Part shown: positions 51,720 through 62,371 of the stretch, one piece after another | Layout: each line of letters opens with the position of its first letter | Numbering within the stretch: the stretch's first letter is position 1 | Virus record (IMG/VR): IMGVR_UViG_3300023049_000005 | Span: 62,001 to 126,000 of that record | DNA length: 64,000 bases | Direction: 5' to 3' (one strand) | Translations under genes and position numbers: made by a program | The notes under the pieces: generated by a model | The model's database searches: none | What the model was told of the DNA's origin: nothing | What the model saw: the letters and a program-made list of their open reading frames with translations, nothing else

Positions 51720-51946
51720 TATTTTTCGAATTTAATAGTCACAGATTTAATATATTTATTATCTTCGAATGTTTTAACTACTTCTTTTGTAGCTTCTTTC
51801 ATTTCGAAAATATTTTTTTCTATTAAATCCTCAAAATTATCATTAGTGAAATTATTAGTACTCCATCGTTTCTGTTTTTAATATATTCCATCTTTAGTTG
51901 TCTTTAATATTACAACAAATATACGAATTATTTTAATATATAAGAT

Positions 51947-52615
51947 ATGTTATTTAAATATCAACAATTTTTAAAAGAGAATAATAGTCTTAATATTTGG
52001 TATCATGGTACACCCGATGGTAGAGGGATAGTCAAAGATGGATTCTCACAAAATACTAAAAGTGTGGAATATTTAAAAGATATTGAAGGTTATAAAGATA
52101 TTATGAACCAATTAGAACAAGCTAGAATAGATGGTAAAGATAAATACTTTGAGATATTAGATAAGATATCTGATTTCAAAGACAATTTCACTTTTAATAA
52201 ACCTATATTTTTAAGTAATAATTATAGAGTTGCTTCTACGTATGCTACTGAGAAAAGAGCATTTGATTACCAAGAATCTATACCGAAAGTATTTAAAATG
52301 GGTATAAAAAACGAAGGTAAGGTATTAACTATATATGCTCACAATAAACGATTTAGATTTATTGATTCTGATTTTATAAAAAAGGGGTTAATGGACGGTG
52401 GTATAAGTTCAGAAAAAGCTGAAGAAACTATAAGTAAATTCAATTTCTTTTCAAGAAAAGATGGGATATCGATAGATACTATTGGAGCTATTGCTACTTA
52501 TTTAGGATTTGATACAGTAGATGTAGTTGGTGTATTAGATAGTTACCACGGTGGTACTGTAAAATCTACGGTAAGAATGGTATTTGATTCGAAGAATATA
52601 GAGATATTAAACTAA
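51947..52615 (+). CDS. ADP-ribosyltransferase-like protein with CTS-like N-terminus
   Basis: WYHGT...IFLS....VA.TYA...GFD.V...VF pattern; MLFKYQQFLKEN. Confidence 0.6.
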   Translation: MLFKYQQFLKENNSLNIWYHGTPDGRGIVKDGFSQNTKSVEYLKDIEGYKDIMNQLEQARIDGKDKYFEILDKISDFKDNFTFNKPIFLSNNYRVASTYATEKRAFDYQESIPKVFKMGIKNEGKVLTIYAHNKRFRFIDSDFIKKGLMDGGISSEKAEETISKFNFFSRKDGISIDTIGAIATYLGFDTVDVVGVLDSYHGGTVKSTVRMVFDSKNIEILN

Positions 52616-53034
52616 TCTCCTAATATTTTATCTATCATATAATCTCTCATAAGATAACTAAAATTTTTATCATTAGATAATGTTTCTAAGGTATCATTAT
52701 ATGATTTCTCTGTAACAGTTAAATTATATTCTTTTACATAGTCTAATCTACGTAATAAAAATCGACGCATTAAATCCTTATCTCTGAAATAAAAAGTAGA
52801 TTGATTTGATGCGTGATCAGAAGGATCTGTTTCTATTCTCGATAATTTATCAACACTTAATTGACTTCCATAATAACAATTTTCTAATTTCAAATTATTA
52901 TTTAACGGAAAATTCAATTCGTATATTTGACCTTGTGCGAATGGGTTGATGATAACAGTAGTATAGCGATATTCTTCTAGTTTCTTAGCTATACTTTTAG
53001 ATTGTTTACTAGTTAGACTAAGACCATTAACCAT
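52612..53034 (-). CDS. hypothetical protein, C-terminal motif family; probably starts at 53164 across an A9 frameshift
   Basis: ends RDYMIDKILGD; removing one A from the run at 53075-83 joins it to the ATG at 53164. Confidence 0.6.
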   Translation of the reverse strand: MVNGLSLTSKQSKSIAKKLEEYRYTTVIINPFAQGQIYELNFPLNNNLKLENCYYGSQLSVDKLSRIETDPSDHASNQSTFYFRDKDLMRRFLLRRLDYVKEYNLTVTEKSYNDTLETLSNDKNFSYLMRDYMIDKILGD

Positions 53035-53280
53035 TTCATTAACTGTCTTAAAGGGTAATAATTCTAACTTATTGTTTTTTTTTATTATAATAAGTCTTTA
53101 TATCATTAGCTAAAAATCCGTTATTCTCTTTAATGTAGATGAAATTATTTCTATTATTTCCCATAATTTGTCTATTTATTACAGCAAATATAACCAATTT
53201 TAATTAAATATAGGCTAAAAGACCTATAAGTACTTAATATAGTCTTATATGGCTATAATTAAGTTTTTTATATATAATTC

Positions 53281-53718
53281 ATGAAAAAATTCTTAATTAA
53301 ATTAATCTATAAATGTATAGAGCTTATAGAAAGGATAGAATATAGAAACCATATATTAGACGAAGATGATAATGATTATAAAATATTATCTGAACATGAT
53401 GTTTATGGGTATAAAGTTAAATCTGATTCGGGTTATATTGATATTAGTAAAATGATGATCACACAACCATATACTCATTATTATTTAGAGTTAGAAAATG
53501 GGATGAATTTGACTTGTGCTGATAATCATAGAATATTTGATCAATATTTAAGTGAAATGTTTGTGAAACACTTAAAGGTAGGTGATAAAATATCTACTGA
53601 ATCAGGTATATCTAAAGTTAAGATAATAAAGAAATTGAAAAGAAAGACTTCTATGGTTGATATTACAGTTGATCATGAAGACCATAGGTATTATACAAAT
53701 GGTATATTAAGTCATAAC
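53281..53718 (+). mobile_element. intein C-fragment (IntC)
   Basis: ends His-Asn with Thr at +1; no recognisable block A or N-extein in the ORF. Confidence 0.8.
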
Positions 53719-55518
53719 ACAGTATGTGCGGCTATTTATATATTACATTATATGATGTTTAATAATAATAAAAACGTACTTATTGCTGCGAATAAATTAG
53801 AAACATCACAAGAAGTACTTGATAAAATTAAGACACTTTATAGTTACATTCCATTGTTTTTAAAACAAGGTATTGATACATGGAATGTAAATAGGATAAA
53901 ATTTGAGAACGGATGTAGAGCTAAAGCATTCGCAATGACGAAAAATGCTTCTATTGGTAATGCGGGTGACTTAGTATATGTTGATGAGTTTGCCCATATT
54001 AATAATAATATAGCAGATAAATTCTATAAATCTATTTTCCCTACTTTAGCATCTATCGAAAATTCTAAAATGATTATTACATCGACACCTGATGGATATA
54101 ACCTATTTCATAAACTATTAACAGATGCTGAGAGAGAAATATCAGATCCATTGAAGAATGAGTTTACACCATTGAGGGTTTATTGGCATCAAGTACCTGG
54201 TCGTAATGTAACTTATTTCAAGATAAACCAACATTTATTATTACAACAGAATTTAGATTTAGATTCGGTCTTTGAACAATTGAAAGAAATATATAACCCT
54301 AACGATGATGTCAATTCTAATAATATTCCTCTTGTAACAAAGAAAACACAAAGTATTAATAGGAAAACATGGATACATGTACAGAACACAGAAAGATTAA
54401 AATATGATGATCTTAAAAATACTTCTGTGGTCAATAGAGATGGTGAAAAAATATTTTGTTCTACATTCTGTGATGGTATTTCTACTTGGAAATTAGATGC
54501 AATTAAGAATATTGGTGGTGAGGATAACTTTAATCAAGAATATGATCTTCGTTTCGCATCAGGGTCTAGAAGTGTATTAAAAGAAGAAACCATTGAAAGA
54601 ATTACTAATAGTAAACAAAAGTATAGACATATTAATGGATTAGAAGAATTCGATAAATTAAAATGGGATTATAGCTCATTAAAATTCGCTAAAGATTGGG
54701 ATGAAGATATGAGAAAGAATATGTATGGTATGATCTCCGTCGATGTATCTGAGGGATTAGGTCAAGATTATAGTGTAATTAATATGTTCAGATTAGGATA
54801 TAAATCACAAGAAATAATAGAAGAACAAAAGGAACACTATTCAGTAAGAGAAGACTTTTTTCAATTAACTCAATTTGGATTATTTAGATCTAATATAATT
54901 AGTGTAGAGCAACTTGCTGAGATACTTTATGTATTGATATTCGAATTTTTTGATCCTGATAAAATGAAAGTAGTTGTTGAATATAACAATGACGGAAAGA
55001 CATTATTGAATGCTATTAAGAACGTATTCAACAGAGAGAATGATTATAGTACTTATGTTATGTTAAAATTTAAACATCGATTAGATGCTGTTGATCGAAA
55101 GGTAGGTCTGAAAGTAGGACTTAATAAAAATAAGTTTGTTAAAGATTATCAGTTAATGTTAGAAGATCAGACTATTTTAGTTAGTGAAGAGAATACTATC
55201 AAAGAGATATCTACCTTTATTTCACATGAAACAGCAGCAGGGAATGTGATTTATAGAGGGGATGGTTCTAATGATGACTTAGCTATGACTATTGTGAATC
55301 TAACACAAGGTTGGAGAAACAGATCATTTAAAGATACTGTATTAGATTTCATGGATAATGAACCGAATAATATTATAAATAAATTAATAGCTGAGGTATT
55401 AGAAAAGGAGAAGTCTATTGGAACAGATTATGGATCTTTTTTTAAGGGTAAGAAAAATTACACAAATTATAATACTAGAAATTTTAGAGGGGGTATAGAC
55501 CCTAAATCACTTATTTAA
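53281..55518 (+). CDS. terL: terminase large subunit C-terminal half preceded by a split-intein C-fragment
   Basis: aa 1-146 intein (CADNH block B; YYTNGILSHN), then T of Walker A, VDEFAH Walker B, ITSTP.G, DVSEG.GQDYS, NDDLAM. Confidence 0.9.
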   Translation: MKKFLIKLIYKCIELIERIEYRNHILDEDDNDYKILSEHDVYGYKVKSDSGYIDISKMMITQPYTHYYLELENGMNLTCADNHRIFDQYLSEMFVKHLKVGDKISTESGISKVKIIKKLKRKTSMVDITVDHEDHRYYTNGILSHNTVCAAIYILHYMMFNNNKNVLIAANKLETSQEVLDKIKTLYSYIPLFLKQGIDTWNVNRIKFENGCRAKAFAMTKNASIGNAGDLVYVDEFAHINNNIADKFYKSIFPTLASIENSKMIITSTPDGYNLFHKLLTDAEREISDPLKNEFTPLRVYWHQVPGRNVTYFKINQHLLLQQNLDLDSVFEQLKEIYNPNDDVNSNNIPLVTKKTQSINRKTWIHVQNTERLKYDDLKNTSVVNRDGEKIFCSTFCDGISTWKLDAIKNIGGEDNFNQEYDLRFASGSRSVLKEETIERITNSKQKYRHINGLEEFDKLKWDYSSLKFAKDWDEDMRKNMYGMISVDVSEGLGQDYSVINMFRLGYKSQEIIEEQKEHYSVREDFFQLTQFGLFRSNIISVEQLAEILYVLIFEFFDPDKMKVVVEYNNDGKTLLNAIKNVFNRENDYSTYVMLKFKHRLDAVDRKVGLKVGLNKNKFVKDYQLMLEDQTILVSEENTIKEISTFISHETAAGNVIYRGDGSNDDLAMTIVNLTQGWRNRSFKDTVLDFMDNEPNNIINKLIAEVLEKEKSIGTDYGSFFKGKKNYTNYNTRNFRGGIDPKSLI

Positions 55519-55863
55519 GCTTTCATCTATCATTTTTTTCCATTCGGCAGCACCTTCGTAATCTTCAACTTTAACACAATTTTCCATTTCGGTTTCCATT
55601 TCCTTGATTGCGTCTTTTTTAATTATATTAAGGTTCTTCTCAACATTAGCTTCTAGTCCTACTAATATTTGATTGTTTTTTTGATGTAATCTAACAGTTC
55701 TTTCGGTTCTTAATTCATTTAGACCATTATTAAAATCATTTAATTCACCTATTGTGTTAGATTCGAATATTTCCTCAGTGAGTTTTACTATCTCAATAAA
55801 TACATCGTTTTTATTGGTATGTAATTCCAAGTACCCTACTATTCTATCTTTCATTTTATCCAT
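55507..55863 (-). CDS. UVR (UvrB/C-type coiled-coil) domain protein
   Basis: EMENCVKVEDYEGAAEWKKMI. Confidence 0.7.
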   Translation of the reverse strand: MDKMKDRIVGYLELHTNKNDVFIEIVKLTEEIFESNTIGELNDFNNGLNELRTERTVRLHQKNNQILVGLEANVEKNLNIIKKDAIKEMETEMENCVKVEDYEGAAEWKKMIDESLNK

Positions 55864-56006: not shown

Positions 56007-59000
56007 ATGCCAACAGTAGATATAGGTAAATACCAAAGACCAGGAATTTTCATAGAAGAATTTAATAACTCAGCAATAGAAACACCTATTGTTACAGGTA
56101 TTCAGTCATTAGTTATTGGTTCTAGTAAGAAAGGACCTCTCAATACACCTGTTGTAATTAACTCACAAATCCAATTAGAAAGAATTTTTGGAACAATTGA
56201 TAGATCTTTAGAATCAAAGGGTTCTTTTTTTCACAGAACTATATCAAGAGTTTTACAAAACACACCCGTAGTTGCTATGAACATAGTAGACTTAGACGAC
56301 GATTTAGATCAAATCGAGTATAAATCATTATCAACAGCAACAGGTTATGTAAATGATGCAATAAGAGAAGCACCATATAGTAGATTTTTCAATACTTCTG
56401 CTTTTTGGGAAAAAGATAGAGAAGCATTTTTATCTGTAACAGACGATAACGCAGGTGACGAAAATAGAGTATTACACTTCACTAACTTAAATAATAGACA
56501 AGTTACTATCTTTATAGTAAAGTCACAAAACTCATATGGATTTGATAAAACATTATTAGAATGGTATGGATCAGTTGATAAAGTACCTTTATATTTGGAT
56601 AAAAATGATTTCGCATCAGACTACTTAGTAGATGTTGTAATGTTATCAGGAGATTGGACTAATTACACTGAATTATCAGTAGATCCAATTTGGAGTCAAT
56701 ACTTCAATAACCAAGGATTAGTTAAAGATCAATTATTCAATTTAGTGAATAATCAAAGTATTAATACGTTAGGGGTATTCAGAAACTTATCATTAATCCC
56801 TTACTTCACAGATGCTAGTAACACTAACATCTTTATTGAAGATAGAATTAATTTAAGAACTGATGAAACAGGTATTTATATGGCATATAATATCGACGCA
56901 GTAGAAACTACATATAGAAATGGTTTATTAGATTTAGTAGGTAATAATATTATTGCTGATAACACTATTGAAAGAATTGAAATGTTATCATATAATGATG
57001 ATGTTACAGAAAAAAACGAATATGTTGAAAAACAATTAGATTCATTAGGTAATACACACCAATTAACATTTGGTTCTTATTATCAAGAAGCGGGTCAAGA
57101 AAGAAAGGCAGCATACGCAGAGGATTTTGTGATCGGTCTTATCGGACCTTCTGCATCTGAGATTGATGGTACATACCCATCGGATGTAGGATATGGTACA
57201 TATAGCGTAGATTTTGGTACAACTTCTGTAACAATTGGAGCAGAACAACCATATGCTATCATTGGTGGACAAGCTTTATTAATAGCTGCTACTGATTTTG
57301 ATTTTGTTCCTGATGATTTTACGACAAATAGTACAAGTCCTGGAACAACACAAAGTTTCCAAAAAGTATTCTTTATTGATACTGACGGTGGTATTAAAAC
57401 TAACCCTAATAACAATGACCTCACAAATGGTATAGTATTAGGTTACGTTGATATTATAGTAGCATTAGATGCAGATAGAGTTAAATATTTCCAATCTGTT
57501 GACTATACACCTGTATCAGTAGGTGAAAGTGGATTTATCTACTTTGATAATTCAACTGATGTAACAGTAACAGTTAACGCTAATCAAAATCAAATTACAT
57601 ATGAATTCTTAAACACAACAGGAGTTCCTGATGTAACTGATTATGTTGGATATAGAAGATGGAAGACATTTAATAATATGTCAGGTATCTTAAGTAGTTC
57701 AACAGGAAATAGAGCAACAATATTAGTAGATGAAGGAAGTGGTTCTAATGGAAATCCATGGAAAAGAGCTATTGCTGATCTAGACGTTACATTAGTAACT
57801 AGCACTACATTAAATAAAACAATAACAATTAGTGGATTTGATACAGGATTTTTAAATTCTTCTATCTTAGAAACTAACGGACTTGTATTACATATAATTG
57901 ATAATGAATTTGTATTATCATCAGAAGGTGCTATTACAACAAATAATTGGATTGGAGCAACATATGGTATAGTAGCTGAATACAGTGATTTATATCAAGA
58001 TTATATAGATGGTAATATAAACACAGGAGATTATTTCTACGAAAACTTAATTGATGGATTAGATAATACAGCCGAAGCATCTGAGTTAAACTATGTTAGA
58101 TTATTAGATATCAATGGTGATGATTACTTAATAAGTGATAAAGAATTAAATTTCCAAACGAATGATACTATTATCTTACCTGAATCTACAAGTAACACAG
58201 GAGAATTGATCGTTTCAGATCCAACTCCAATTGCTACGGGATTAACGGGAGCGACAGGTGCGTATTTTGGATATTTATTATCATCTAATATTACTGATGA
58301 AGTAATAGTTAATCCAACTAAGATTTGGTTAACAAGCGGAACAGGACAAAAATTCCTAAGATTTTACTTAGTGAATGATATATTGACAATTGATTTTACT
58401 GATGCTAGTCTAAACCCTGGTGCGAGTACATTCAATAAAACGATTGATATTATTTCACAATCATCTAATTTTAGACAAACAGTAGAAATAGAAGAACCTG
58501 TAGGATACACTCCTATAACTAATAAAATATTAGTAGATGCTACTAGATATGCTGAAATTAGAATAGGTGATTTCTTACAAGCAGTAGCACCTGAGGCAAC
58601 TGAATTAGGAGAAGTTCCAAGACAAGTAACAAGAGTTATCAGAAAAAGAACATATTCTGAGGATGTATCATTAGTAGAAATTACATGTGATTCAGCTATT
58701 AGATTATATGACTTCAATGGTGATAAACAAACATACAGATTTACACAGATCGATGATTATGTATCAACATATAAAGGTATTAATTTATTTGGTTTCAGAT
58801 TAAGAACAGCTTCTTTACCTGATAATACTGATAGTAGATTAACAGATATATTAAATGTAGTAGGTAAAGGAACATCTTTATATAACGCATTAACAGATAA
58901 AAATATCATTGATTTTAGATACTTGATCGATTCTTATGGATTAGGTCTTATAAGTAATTCTAAGCAACAATTAGCTGATATTTGTGGTAAGCGTTTAGAT

Positions 59001-59816
59001 TGCTTCGGTATATTAAACATGCCAAGTATGAAACAATTTAGAAATGCTGCAGCACCGAGTTTCACTGATAGTAGAGGTGCTATTAGATTTGATTATATCA
59101 GATTAGGAGGTAACCCTGAAGCAGTTGCGGGATTTAACTTCTCATTAGCAGAAGGCGATGGTCAAACATGTGTGGCTTACTTTACTCCTTATGTAACAAT
59201 AGGAGATAACGGTAGACCAATTTCATTACCACCATCATCATTTGTGGCTAACACTTTCCTTAGAAAGCATAATAACGCTCTAACAAGTGTGACACCATGG
59301 ACTATTGCTGCGGGTATTACTGATGGACAAATTACAGGTATATCAGGATTAGAATATAATTTAACAAATGAAGATATCATCGAGTTAAACCAAATGTCAG
59401 TTAACCCAATTGTTTCTAAGAGAAACAGAGGTAATGTAATTGAAACTGAGAATACAGCAGAATCACTAGTAAATAGTGCATTAAGCTTTATCCATTCAAG
59501 AGAAGTATTAATTGAATTAGAAAGAGATCTTTCTGATATGTTACTACAATTCCAATGGAAATATAACACACCTGAGATTAGATCAGAGATCAAATTAAGA
59601 GCAGATACTATCTGTCAAGACTATGTAAATAGAAACGGACTATTTAACTTCTTTAATAAGATTGATAGTGAAAACAACACACAGGAGATTATCGATAATC
59701 AAATAGGTGTATTAGACACATATGTTGAGATTATTAAAGGTATGGGTGTAATTGTTAATAACATCACGATACTTAATACGGGTGCAATTGATTCATCAGG
59801 TTTTCAAACTAGTTAA
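56007..59816 (+). CDS. contractile tail sheath protein (gp18-like), enlarged
   Basis: RPGIFIEE, G.SKKGP.NTPV, PPS..VA, PW...AG...G, VNPI, D..NNT...ID. Confidence 0.92.
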   Translation: MPTVDIGKYQRPGIFIEEFNNSAIETPIVTGIQSLVIGSSKKGPLNTPVVINSQIQLERIFGTIDRSLESKGSFFHRTISRVLQNTPVVAMNIVDLDDDLDQIEYKSLSTATGYVNDAIREAPYSRFFNTSAFWEKDREAFLSVTDDNAGDENRVLHFTNLNNRQVTIFIVKSQNSYGFDKTLLEWYGSVDKVPLYLDKNDFASDYLVDVVMLSGDWTNYTELSVDPIWSQYFNNQGLVKDQLFNLVNNQSINTLGVFRNLSLIPYFTDASNTNIFIEDRINLRTDETGIYMAYNIDAVETTYRNGLLDLVGNNIIADNTIERIEMLSYNDDVTEKNEYVEKQLDSLGNTHQLTFGSYYQEAGQERKAAYAEDFVIGLIGPSASEIDGTYPSDVGYGTYSVDFGTTSVTIGAEQPYAIIGGQALLIAATDFDFVPDDFTTNSTSPGTTQSFQKVFFIDTDGGIKTNPNNNDLTNGIVLGYVDIIVALDADRVKYFQSVDYTPVSVGESGFIYFDNSTDVTVTVNANQNQITYEFLNTTGVPDVTDYVGYRRWKTFNNMSGILSSSTGNRATILVDEGSGSNGNPWKRAIADLDVTLVTSTTLNKTITISGFDTGFLNSSILETNGLVLHIIDNEFVLSSEGAITTNNWIGATYGIVAEYSDLYQDYIDGNINTGDYFYENLIDGLDNTAEASELNYVRLLDINGDDYLISDKELNFQTNDTIILPESTSNTGELIVSDPTPIATGLTGATGAYFGYLLSSNITDEVIVNPTKIWLTSGTGQKFLRFYLVNDILTIDFTDASLNPGASTFNKTIDIISQSSNFRQTVEIEEPVGYTPITNKILVDATRYAEIRIGDFLQAVAPEATELGEVPRQVTRVIRKRTYSEDVSLVEITCDSAIRLYDFNGDKQTYRFTQIDDYVSTYKGINLFGFRLRTASLPDNTDSRLTDILNVVGKGTSLYNALTDKNIIDFRYLIDSYGLGLISNSKQQLADICGKRLDCFGILNMPSMKQFRNAAAPSFTDSRGAIRFDYIRLGGNPEAVAGFNFSLAEGDGQTCVAYFTPYVTIGDNGRPISLPPSSFVANTFLRKHNNALTSVTPWTIAAGITDGQITGISGLEYNLTNEDIIELNQMSVNPIVSKRNRGNVIETENTAESLVNSALSFIHSREVLIELERDLSDMLLQFQWKYNTPEIRSEIKLRADTICQDYVNRNGLFNFFNKIDSENNTQEIIDNQIGVLDTYVEIIKGMGVIVNNITILNTGAIDSSGFQTS

Positions 59817-61990: not shown

Positions 61991-62371
61991 CTATATCAAG
62001 TTATTTATTATTTGATCTCTTTTTATAATCTTCTCTATATCTATTGTAGTATAGAATCCATATCGAGCATTCGATTTATATTTTTGGTAAAAGTCAATAC
62101 TCCACAGTTCACCTAATTCTGAATAAGAATTAAATATACTATATCTATTTATACCACTTAAGGCTGTTTTATCTGACCCTGTGGTTATCTTATAAACACC
62201 ACCTTTAGTTTCTCTTTCTCCAAAATCACCATAATAATACACACCATTATCAACTTCAATAGTAAATTCTAATTTATAATCTCGTGCTAAAGCACTTTTC
62301 GTTATATACTTATCTATATTATTGAAAATGGTAATAATATCCTCTGTTAGTGGTTTTCGTTTAATCTTCAT
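61991..62371 (-). CDS. hypothetical protein, paralog of 62749..63174, C-terminal motif family
   Basis: YGDFG, GINRY, YQKYK shared; ends RDQIINNLI. Confidence 0.7.
   Translation of the reverse strand: MKIKRKPLTEDIITIFNNIDKYITKSALARDYKLEFTIEVDNGVYYYGDFGERETKGGVYKITTGSDKTALSGINRYSIFNSYSELGELWSIDFYQKYKSNARYGFYTTIDIEKIIKRDQIINNLI

Follow-up and report, generated by a model that had tools for sequence, protein, structure and literature searches.

The phage represented by IMG/VR virus record IMGVR_UViG_3300023049_000005 very probably makes its sole large terminase (TerL), an enzyme of the T4 gp17 type, as two proteins that are encoded by same-strand genes 69.6 kb apart and joined by a split intein with a predicted helical clamp. 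We analysed a window of 64,000 nucleotides, which corresponds to positions 62,001–126,000 of this linear 270,756-bp record (G000, 29.8% G+C); CheckV estimates the completeness of the record at 89%, and lake-water metagenomes contain its DNA. Positions below are those of the window unless the record is named. The anatomy of the two genes, the exact extein junction, the conservation of the catalytic residues, the lack of a second terL in the record and the homology to characterised split inteins were all observed directly, and, judging from the sequence, the split-intein terminase is real and almost certainly functional. Natural atypically split TerL inteins, remote intein halves (as in DnaE) and a TerL intein site in the P-loop are already known. 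The pair of helices beside the break, relatives that carry them as a hairpin in cis, and the abundance of this long form in data from lakes, the sea and huge phages are not described in the literature that we read.

The gene for the C-terminal fragment occupies 53281–55518 on the plus strand, as do all of its features given here, and encodes 745 amino acids (aa) from an ATG at 53281. An in-frame TAA at 53275–53277, two codons before this ATG, excludes a longer upstream reading frame. The original prediction for this stretch held that the open reading frame (ORF) begins inside an intein and continues into TVCAAIY, and all of the motifs that it named were found. The first 146 codons (53281–53718) encode the C-terminal half (IntC) of an atypically split class-1 intein, with blocks B, F and G. 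Block B, LTCADNH (aa 77–83, 53509–53529), contains His83, and blocks F/G, VDITV...YYTNGILSHN (aa 126–146, 53656–53718), contain Asp127 and end in His145-Asn146, as judged from the sequence and from homologues. A80, D81 and H83 of block B are invariant in 67 homologues. The residue three positions before the block B His is Ala (C-A-D-N-H), not the usual Thr/Ser; Kuttervirus likewise has Ala (A-D-E-H), whereas gp41-1 and the Cat consensus have Ser.

Immediately after IntC the protein reads T147-VCAAIY. The codon at 53719–53721, with which the stretch singled out earlier had ended, specifies Thr+1 (Thr147), which is at once the C-extein nucleophile and the Walker A Thr of G-K-T. From this codon to 55518 (599 aa plus the stop) runs the C-extein, full length and free of internal stops, which comprises the rest of the TerL ATPase domain and the nuclease domain. 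Pfam Terminase_6N (PF03237) matches the C-fragment from aa 147 (E 6.9e-13, 49.2 bits against a cut-off of 22), and the PHROG terminase families match it from aa ~125 (best E 1.2e-31; phrog_2, E 2.6e-26). The motifs are of the T4 gp17 type, namely ASRQIGK followed by T (once spliced), Walker B LVYVDEF, ITSTPDG and SVDVSEGLGQDYSV. We judge these features to lie far beyond chance, given that the catalytic residues are invariant across homologues.

In terminase profile searches, phrog_36964 and phrog_2 matched a second location in the genome, outside the window. Here lies the gene for the N-terminal fragment (record 184,877–185,374, plus strand; L003:1396–1893), an ORF of 165 aa that ends in TAG directly after the N-terminal half of the intein (IntN). 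The N-fragment ending in ...GK-C plus a short IntN, which the original prediction proposed to look for in the rest of the genome, is therefore present. It reads MANEKK...LMASRQIGK/CVDPLTEVKIIDKTDNNYIMPFFRLLYKSKVSKTIYDHIKYVLYSLLYKLS and then stops, where the slash, here and below, marks the junction of extein and intein; IntN opens with CVDPLTEVKIID and closes with YKLS. Position 1 of the intein is C115, followed by the block-A strand (ASRQIGK/C115 VDPLTEVKIID), so that the N-extein comprises 114 aa up to the Walker A sequence ...ASRQIGK. IntN had been expected to be very short; at 51 aa, made up of a core of ~33 aa and then a helix of ~18 aa, it is not. In order, it comprises Cys1 with block A, a short helix and the conserved amphipathic tail helix. 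The N-extein aligns with residues 89–167 of T4 gp17, reaching SRQLGK (E 1.6e-11; structures 3EZK/3CPE/2O0H). A scan of all frames for [RK]QxGK[CSTA] gave one occurrence in the whole 270,756-bp record, at 185,204, and none in the six frames of the window, in line with the earlier statement that no N-terminal terminase region is recognisable within the 64 kb. On the same strand, the start of the N-fragment gene lies 69,596 bp downstream of that of the C-fragment gene. The two genes had rightly been taken to be separate, and their actual distance far exceeds the 8 kb then given as a minimum.

The extein junction could be placed exactly with the help of P0072, an intein-free, contiguous TerL of 706 aa. 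Residues 3–113 of this protein align with the N-extein (59% identity), and the C-extein matches it from residue 114 (TVCAG...) onward, at 63% identity across 581 aa. The boundary K113/T114 thus coincides with the point where the N-extein ends and the C-extein starts, with zero gap or overlap (...ASRQVGK113-T114VCAG...); the counterpart in T4 gp17 is SRQLGK-T. Together with T147, this junction confirms that the enzyme is split inside its P-loop with Thr at the +1 position, as had been proposed.

Like a class-1 intein, the element has Cys1, the block B His, the block F Asp, the block G His-Asn, Thr+1 and a HINT fold, and its site is uninterrupted in the intein-free P0072. The split is atypical in that the break between the two genes falls between blocks A and B, with blocks B, F and G all in IntC. 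The best sequence match of IntC in the PDB is 6DSL_B (CatC; E 5.5e-6, 29.8 bits, covering IntC 27–146), followed by gp41-1 and VidaL. AlphaFold2 (AF2) modelled IntC with a mean predicted local distance difference test score (pLDDT) of 80.9, and the top PDB matches of this model in Foldseek are all inteins (VidaL, TvoVMA, Cat and gp41-1), at a probability of 1.00 and E-values down to 1.9e-6. A genome scan with Pfam Intein_splicing (PF14890) gave no match, not even to the intein described here; since the model is insensitive to this lineage, the scan is uninformative about other inteins.

As a natural split intein in a gp17-type large terminase, broken after block A, the element resembles AceL-TerL, GOS-TerL and Cat (6DSL). 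Work on AceL-TerL and GOS-TerL (Dassa et al., 2009; Thiel et al., 2014; Bachmann & Mootz, 2015; Stevens et al., 2018) is taken here as summarised in a review (PMC11766414), whose table gives fragments of 25/104 aa with Cys1/Cys+1 for AceL-TerL and of 37/115 aa with Ser1/Cys+1 for GOS-TerL. In contrast, the intein of the lake phage measures 51/146 aa and uses Cys1/Thr+1; it lacks the short fragments and the Cys+1 and is therefore a relative, not the same allele, its extra length being a conserved helix on either side of the break. The likeness rests on the split point and on homology. The earlier assignment to an AceL-TerL-like class accordingly holds for the position of the split and the homology to CatC, but not for the fragment sizes and the nucleophiles. 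The loci differ as well: the GOS locus was described as a fractured gene with adjacent halves, whereas here the halves are 69.6 kb apart.

Two further TerL inteins share the insertion site. In Kuttervirus (Ackermannviridae), for example Salmonella phage Maynard, TerL is interrupted at the same point (...ARQSGK/C...YYTNGFLSHN/T), with 36% identity to the lake-phage protein over IntC 14–160 in tblastn; the Maynard intein, however, is contiguous, cis-splicing and 159 aa long, is annotated as ‘intein from Cys110-Asn268’ and lacks the helix pair. Salicola phage SCTP-2 (MF360958), a cultured and viable jumbo phage, has the same GK/C...HN/T split site, Thr+1 and remote halves. Its N piece of 130 aa (IntN 43 aa) lies at 429.4 kb, and its C piece (IntC 116 aa, T+1) at 256.4 kb on the other strand, 173 kb away. 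Unlike the lake-phage intein, that of SCTP-2 is of the short form without the helix pair, and GenBank calls its pieces only ‘terminase large subunit’ and ‘hypothetical protein’. The TerL piece of SCTP-2 that starts with IntC, gene 267 (L010:2962–3855), itself ends in ...SLLY/CLDGETTVKLRD... (CLDGETT) at Walker B, and a third TerL piece was matched at 217.6 kb; because of this second split-intein start, TerL of SCTP-2 consists of at least three pieces. Literature searches yielded nothing on TerL of SCTP-2 and, for split TerL inteins in jumbo phages, only the intron-split terL of Jug phages from the gut, a case without bearing on this one.

The canonical natural split intein is that of cyanobacterial DnaE, an essential enzyme assembled by protein trans-splicing from the products of two distant genes. 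The lake phage shares with DnaE both the distance between the genes and the complementary charge of the halves, with a basic K-x-K patch on the IntN side and an acidic LDEDD patch on the IntC side. DnaE differs in having no flanking helix pair.

The arrangement recurs widely. All but one of 60 N-fragment relatives end in ASRQxGK/C followed by 45–60 aa. Among the best 120 C-fragment relatives, 110 begin inside the intein, with an IntC of 138–153 aa that in every case ends in SHN/T with Thr at +1, and 10 are intein-free and contiguous; one relative carries a different intein at the same TerL site. Conservation was assessed in 56 N-fragment and 67 C-fragment homologues that are just 45–60% identical overall. 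Cys1 is invariant in all 56 of the former, and His83, Asp127, His145, Asn146 and Thr+1 are invariant in the 67 latter. The full set of invariant IntC residues comprises E17, K34, D49, G51, T61-Q62-P63, A80-D81, H83, D127, H135-R136 and S144-H145-N146.

In a library of clusters at 50% identity, IntC alone matches 840 clusters at E ≤ 1e-3. The best 150 of these include 62 short split IntC sequences (≤135 aa), 43 long ones (≥140 aa) and contiguous inteins, of which 10 have ≥185 aa, 9 have ≤175 aa and one has 179 aa. The original prediction had presented the insertion site as unusual. This was an overestimate, as GK/C...HN/T is known in Kuttervirus TerL and SCTP-2 and the split form is very common in metagenomes. 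In a midpoint-rooted FastTree phylogeny of the C-exteins, a quick tree of the top matches only, split alleles fall on either side of the root, the clade of the window's sequence is interspersed with intein-free alleles, and well-supported branches force at least four changes of state.

Two side observations concern the homologues. In P0062, P0098, P0134 and P0158, split C-fragments of 1,068–1,146 aa carry a second, full-length LAGLIDADG/Hint intein farther downstream in TerL. In P0225, P0244, P0278, P0288, P0307 and P0329, a homologous short IntC precedes C-exteins that are not TerL (of the T-LLAKKLAEE type and others), and the atypically split intein lineage therefore also occurs in other proteins. 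Judging from the C-extein alone, the insertion sites in these hosts may be GK/T P-loops.

What sets the lake-phage intein apart from the short forms is found at the break itself. Compared with Cat, SCTP-2 and Maynard, IntC has ~40 extra residues at its N-terminus and IntN ~20 extra residues at its C-terminus. IntC opens with an amphipathic helix (aa 2–20, 53284–53340; AF2 pLDDT ~85) that is missing from the short IntC of the AceL, GOS and SCTP-2 type. An extra helical N-extension of ~35 aa had been claimed for IntC, and it is indeed absent from the AceL/GOS-TerL (Cat) class and from SCTP-2. IntN closes with a second amphipathic helix (residues 149–164 in N-fragment numbering; AF2 pLDDT 91–97). 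In both helices the conserved residues recur with a spacing of three to four, forming a face of I153, K154 (54 of 56 homologues), L157 and Y158 (55 of 56) in IntN and of I13 (64 of 67), I16, E17 (67 of 67) and E20 (61 of 67) in IntC. Next to the helices lie patches of charge: a basic one, YKSKVSK, before that of IntN and a conserved acidic one, LDEDD, after that of IntC.

To predict the complex, IntC with 54 extein residues was modelled together with residues 60–165 of the N-fragment, using alignments that we supplied. The interaction prediction score from aligned errors (ipSAE) was 0.72 (median of three runs), as against 0.00 for the best of three controls. A mark of 0.72 is reached by 58 of 80 solved complexes and by 2 of 110 mismatched pairs, a calibration that is rough because our own alignments were used here. 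The confident interface involves IntC residues 2, 5–6, 9–10, 12–13, 16–17 and 19–20 together with the HINT core on the C chain, and residues 112–127 and 136–165 on the N chain, again with a periodicity of three to four residues. These predicted interface residues coincide with the most conserved residues of the helices. The two helices are also present together throughout the family and missing together in SCTP-2, and both halves of AceL and GOS are short. In the contiguous relatives P0194, P0198, P0204 and P0226, a loop of only a few residues connects these helices, as in a helical hairpin. The joint presence and absence of the helices and their joining by a short loop in contiguous relatives both support their pairing.

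From these features and the model of the complex, we give an even chance to the proposal that the lineage evolved an antiparallel two-helix clamp of its own. Such a clamp would give the halves affinity for one another wherever in a jumbo-phage genome their genes lie, and it could be closed to a hairpin, so that split and cis forms might interconvert. The alternative that survives best is that the helices are leftovers with no role in association, either the remnant of a hairpin in a contiguous ancestor or a product of the break by an endonuclease, and that the HINT core suffices as in AceL-TerL and GOS-TerL. Contiguous inteins with both helices do exist, and the hairpin may for this reason predate the split; helix-less short split inteins occupy the same site, including that of the viable SCTP-2; and GOS-TerL IntN remains active when shortened from 37 to 27 aa (PMC11766414). 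Leftovers would not, however, be expected to be strongly conserved at specific positions on one face of either helix, as seen in sets of 56 and 67 homologues with 45–60% identity overall, nor to be used in a predicted interface at exactly the conserved residues, nor to be present or absent jointly. We therefore regard the leftover explanation as rather unlikely.

The two halves also share a signal upstream of their start codons. The original prediction described a late-type motif exactly 4 nt upstream of the C-fragment ORF, and the sequence confirms it: the box TATATATA lies at 53269–53276 on the plus strand, 4 nt before the ATG, and the N-fragment gene is preceded by the same box at the same N4 spacing. 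A box of this type, 3–4 nt from the ATG, precedes both halves in all four sets of related loci examined. Across the genome, TATATA-N4-ATG precedes 49 of 319 long ORFs, with a sharp positional peak. On the model of the T4 late promoter, TATAAATA at about −10, transcripts would begin at or next to the AUG; the fixed 4-nt spacing seen here suggests leaderless or near-leaderless late mRNAs, and the two halves would fall in a single temporal class. Genome-wide, TATATA boxes also show a second, wider peak 20–24 nt upstream of starts. The intergenic region that follows the N-fragment locus contains, at L003:2124–2186 (~185.6 kb in the record), three copies of GGAAAAATAGGTA in direct orientation, the last of them reading TGAAAAGTAGGTA, at spacings of 20 and 30 nt; they may be an operator or promoter array.

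We infer splicing, helix pairing and co-regulation from the features described above, and a plausible sequence of events can be proposed. Both genes would be switched on together through TATATA-N4-ATG. Next, the IntN tail helix and the IntC head helix would zip into an antiparallel two-helix clamp beside the break; together with the charge patches, this clamp would capture the partners, and the IntN β-strands would complete the HINT fold of IntC. Class-1 splicing would follow, with an N–S acyl shift at Cys1 (Cys115) to the thioester, attack by Thr147, cyclisation of Asn146 and an O–N shift, and would yield a TerL of 713 aa with an intact P-loop, ASRQIGK-T. Before splicing the ATPase would be inactive, because ~200 aa of intein lie inside Walker A.

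Several points weigh against this reading. The three runs of the complex prediction share just 53–62% of their contacts, the pLDDT of the partner is ~59, and the high score may derive from the predictor's memory of solved inteins. The pairing of helix with helix is our own step, because the predictor lists no residue pairs. The AF2 model of IntC reaches TM-scores of just 0.3–0.45 to solved inteins, low values that we ascribe to the half having been modelled alone. A function for the TATATA box is deduced from its position and conservation alone. Finally, as the record is 89% complete, a second terL is conceivable in the missing part.

A different reading of the same proteins is association without splicing, in which the intein would serve only as a dimerisation module and TerL would work as a non-covalent heterodimer. 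The IntC of huge phage LR756500 ends in SSQ/T, which shows drift of the catalytic dyad to be possible in one lineage at least. In the lake phage and in 110 of 110 close homologues, however, Cys1, His83, Asp127, His145-Asn146 and Thr+1 are all kept. Moreover, in such a heterodimer an intein of ~200 aa would separate the Walker A Lys and Thr within the ATP site, whereas intein-free relatives have an uninterrupted GKT. We consider association without splicing to be very improbable.

Still less probable is that the ORF represents an artefact of assembly or the decaying remnant of a terL, with a working terminase elsewhere. An intact terL at another locus or a misassembly just upstream of 53281 had been named as findings that would overturn the original prediction. 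Profile searches and a motif scan revealed no other terL or TerL ATPase domain in the 270.7-kb record. A contig from run X2, an independent lake sample, differs by five single-nucleotide polymorphisms and one 1-nt deletion and spans 52611–53626, bridging the junction. The incompleteness of the record might favour a terminase elsewhere, and a second IMG/VR contig (L006), with an identical C-fragment gene, stops 104 nt upstream of the ATG. This end, however, is the point of a strain-level indel of 1,269 bp: the strains of two other lake samples (runs X3 and X4) lack 51908–53176 and rejoin 104 nt upstream of the C-fragment ATG, at a joint with 7 nt common to both sides. The 1,269-bp segment contains ORFs at 51947–52615 (plus strand, 222 aa) and 52612–53034 (minus strand, 140 aa), neither of which has a family match above threshold, and in none of the strain variants examined is an N-extein present upstream of the C-fragment. 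A remnant is also difficult to reconcile with a matching N-fragment that carries the complementary intein half, with a stop-free C-extein that is 63% identical to an intact TerL, and with hundreds of homologues that have identical gene boundaries. Pseudogene and misassembly are excluded by these observations.

Joining of the RNAs, whether through trans-splicing or a group I/II intron, has a precedent in the terL of gut Jug jumbo phages, which is split by group I introns (PMC12880540), but its probability here is negligible, since no Rfam family matched at E ≤ 0.1 at either terL locus, the genes lie 69.6 kb apart and in relative G001 the halves are on opposite strands, and the complementary intein halves hold all of the catalytic residues. 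Pseudogene, misassembly and RNA-level joining were accordingly rejected on the grounds of the N-fragment found, the bridging contigs and the lack of an Rfam match.

The position of the halves varies among relatives. In G001, a phage 57% identical to the lake phage, they are 22 kb apart on opposite strands, and in huge phage LR756501 they are 12.5 kb apart; on a contig with an N-fragment 81% identical to that of the lake phage, the C-fragment was not found within 10 kb. The halves are adjacent in two cases, namely Ga0611985_0000244, where they are ~1.07 kb apart with two small ORFs between them, and huge phage LR756500, where one ORF of 366 aa intervenes. Observed distances between halves thus run from ~1 kb through 12.5 kb, 22 kb (on opposite strands) and 69.6 kb to 173 kb.

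At its C-terminus, the 366-aa ORF of LR756500 resembles Vsr/DUF559-type endonucleases (PF18741, E 2.5e-5; PF04480, E 2.6e-3), although these matches fall below the Pfam thresholds, a further point on the negative side. A 190-aa ORF in Ga0611985_0000244 is a truncated, decayed homologue of it (44% identity, E 7e-41), and no homologue of this intervening endonuclease-like ORF was found in the genome of the lake phage. A fractured gene, as defined by Dassa et al. (2009; PMC2677866), has adjacent halves with a free-standing homing-endonuclease gene between them, and the same paper calls one GOS terminase intein ‘fractured at an unusual point’. This arrangement is seen in LR756500 and Ga0611985_0000244 but not in the lake phage, where the halves are 69.6 kb apart. 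The endonuclease-like ORF between adjacent halves points to a fractured-gene origin, in which a free-standing endonuclease gene would have broken the intein gene; in the lake phage a rearrangement would later have parted the halves, with loss of the endonuclease. The flanks of Ga0611985_0000244 match those of the lake phage, with an ORF of ~240 aa upstream of the N-fragment, and a UVR-motif ORF and a ~1,270-aa protein, a tail sheath (phrog_34521, E 9e-91), downstream of the C-fragment. Because of this match, the breakpoint of the rearrangement probably lay between the halves, at the former site of the endonuclease gene.

In the window, the UVR-motif ORF (55507–55863, minus strand, 118 aa) has a UvrB/UvrC motif (Pfam UVR, E 9e-8), with a 12-nt overlap at the terL stop. 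The gene after it (56007–59816, plus strand) encodes the tail sheath of 1,269 aa (phrog_34521), and the order of terL then sheath is that of T4 and Kuttervirus. The other neighbouring ORFs, of 140 aa upstream of the C-fragment and of 243 aa and 61 aa beside the N-fragment, gave no informative family. In LR756500, the IntC of the C-fragment (L011:1237–3123, minus strand) ends in ...NGILSSQ/T, not SHN/T, and downstream of this C-fragment lies a TerL-like ORF of 270 aa with SSRQMGIS, which lacks the Walker A Lys; this copy may be degenerating or mechanistically different.

In hundreds of public phage contigs, among them those of 460–735-kb huge phages and the 270-kb lake phage studied here, terL begins ‘inside’ an intein and is accompanied by an unannotated ORF of ~165 aa. 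Because pipelines call the C piece ‘terminase’ and the N piece ‘hypothetical’, a truncated marker enters TerL phylogenies and completeness checks. Atypically split inteins with a short N piece are valued labelling tools, and a natural Thr+1 version with a helical clamp would be of interest for engineering. If the clamp proves real, it would be the natural counterpart of the engineered coiled coils fused to weak split inteins, and the lineage would supply new atypically split inteins that use Cys1/Thr+1 chemistry and may be orthogonal to those now available. For the phages themselves, the arrangement would make an essential late enzyme dependent on the ligation of two proteins across the loop that binds ATP. 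Packaging competence would then be coupled to the co-accumulation of two products, while free relocation of both genes would be tolerated.

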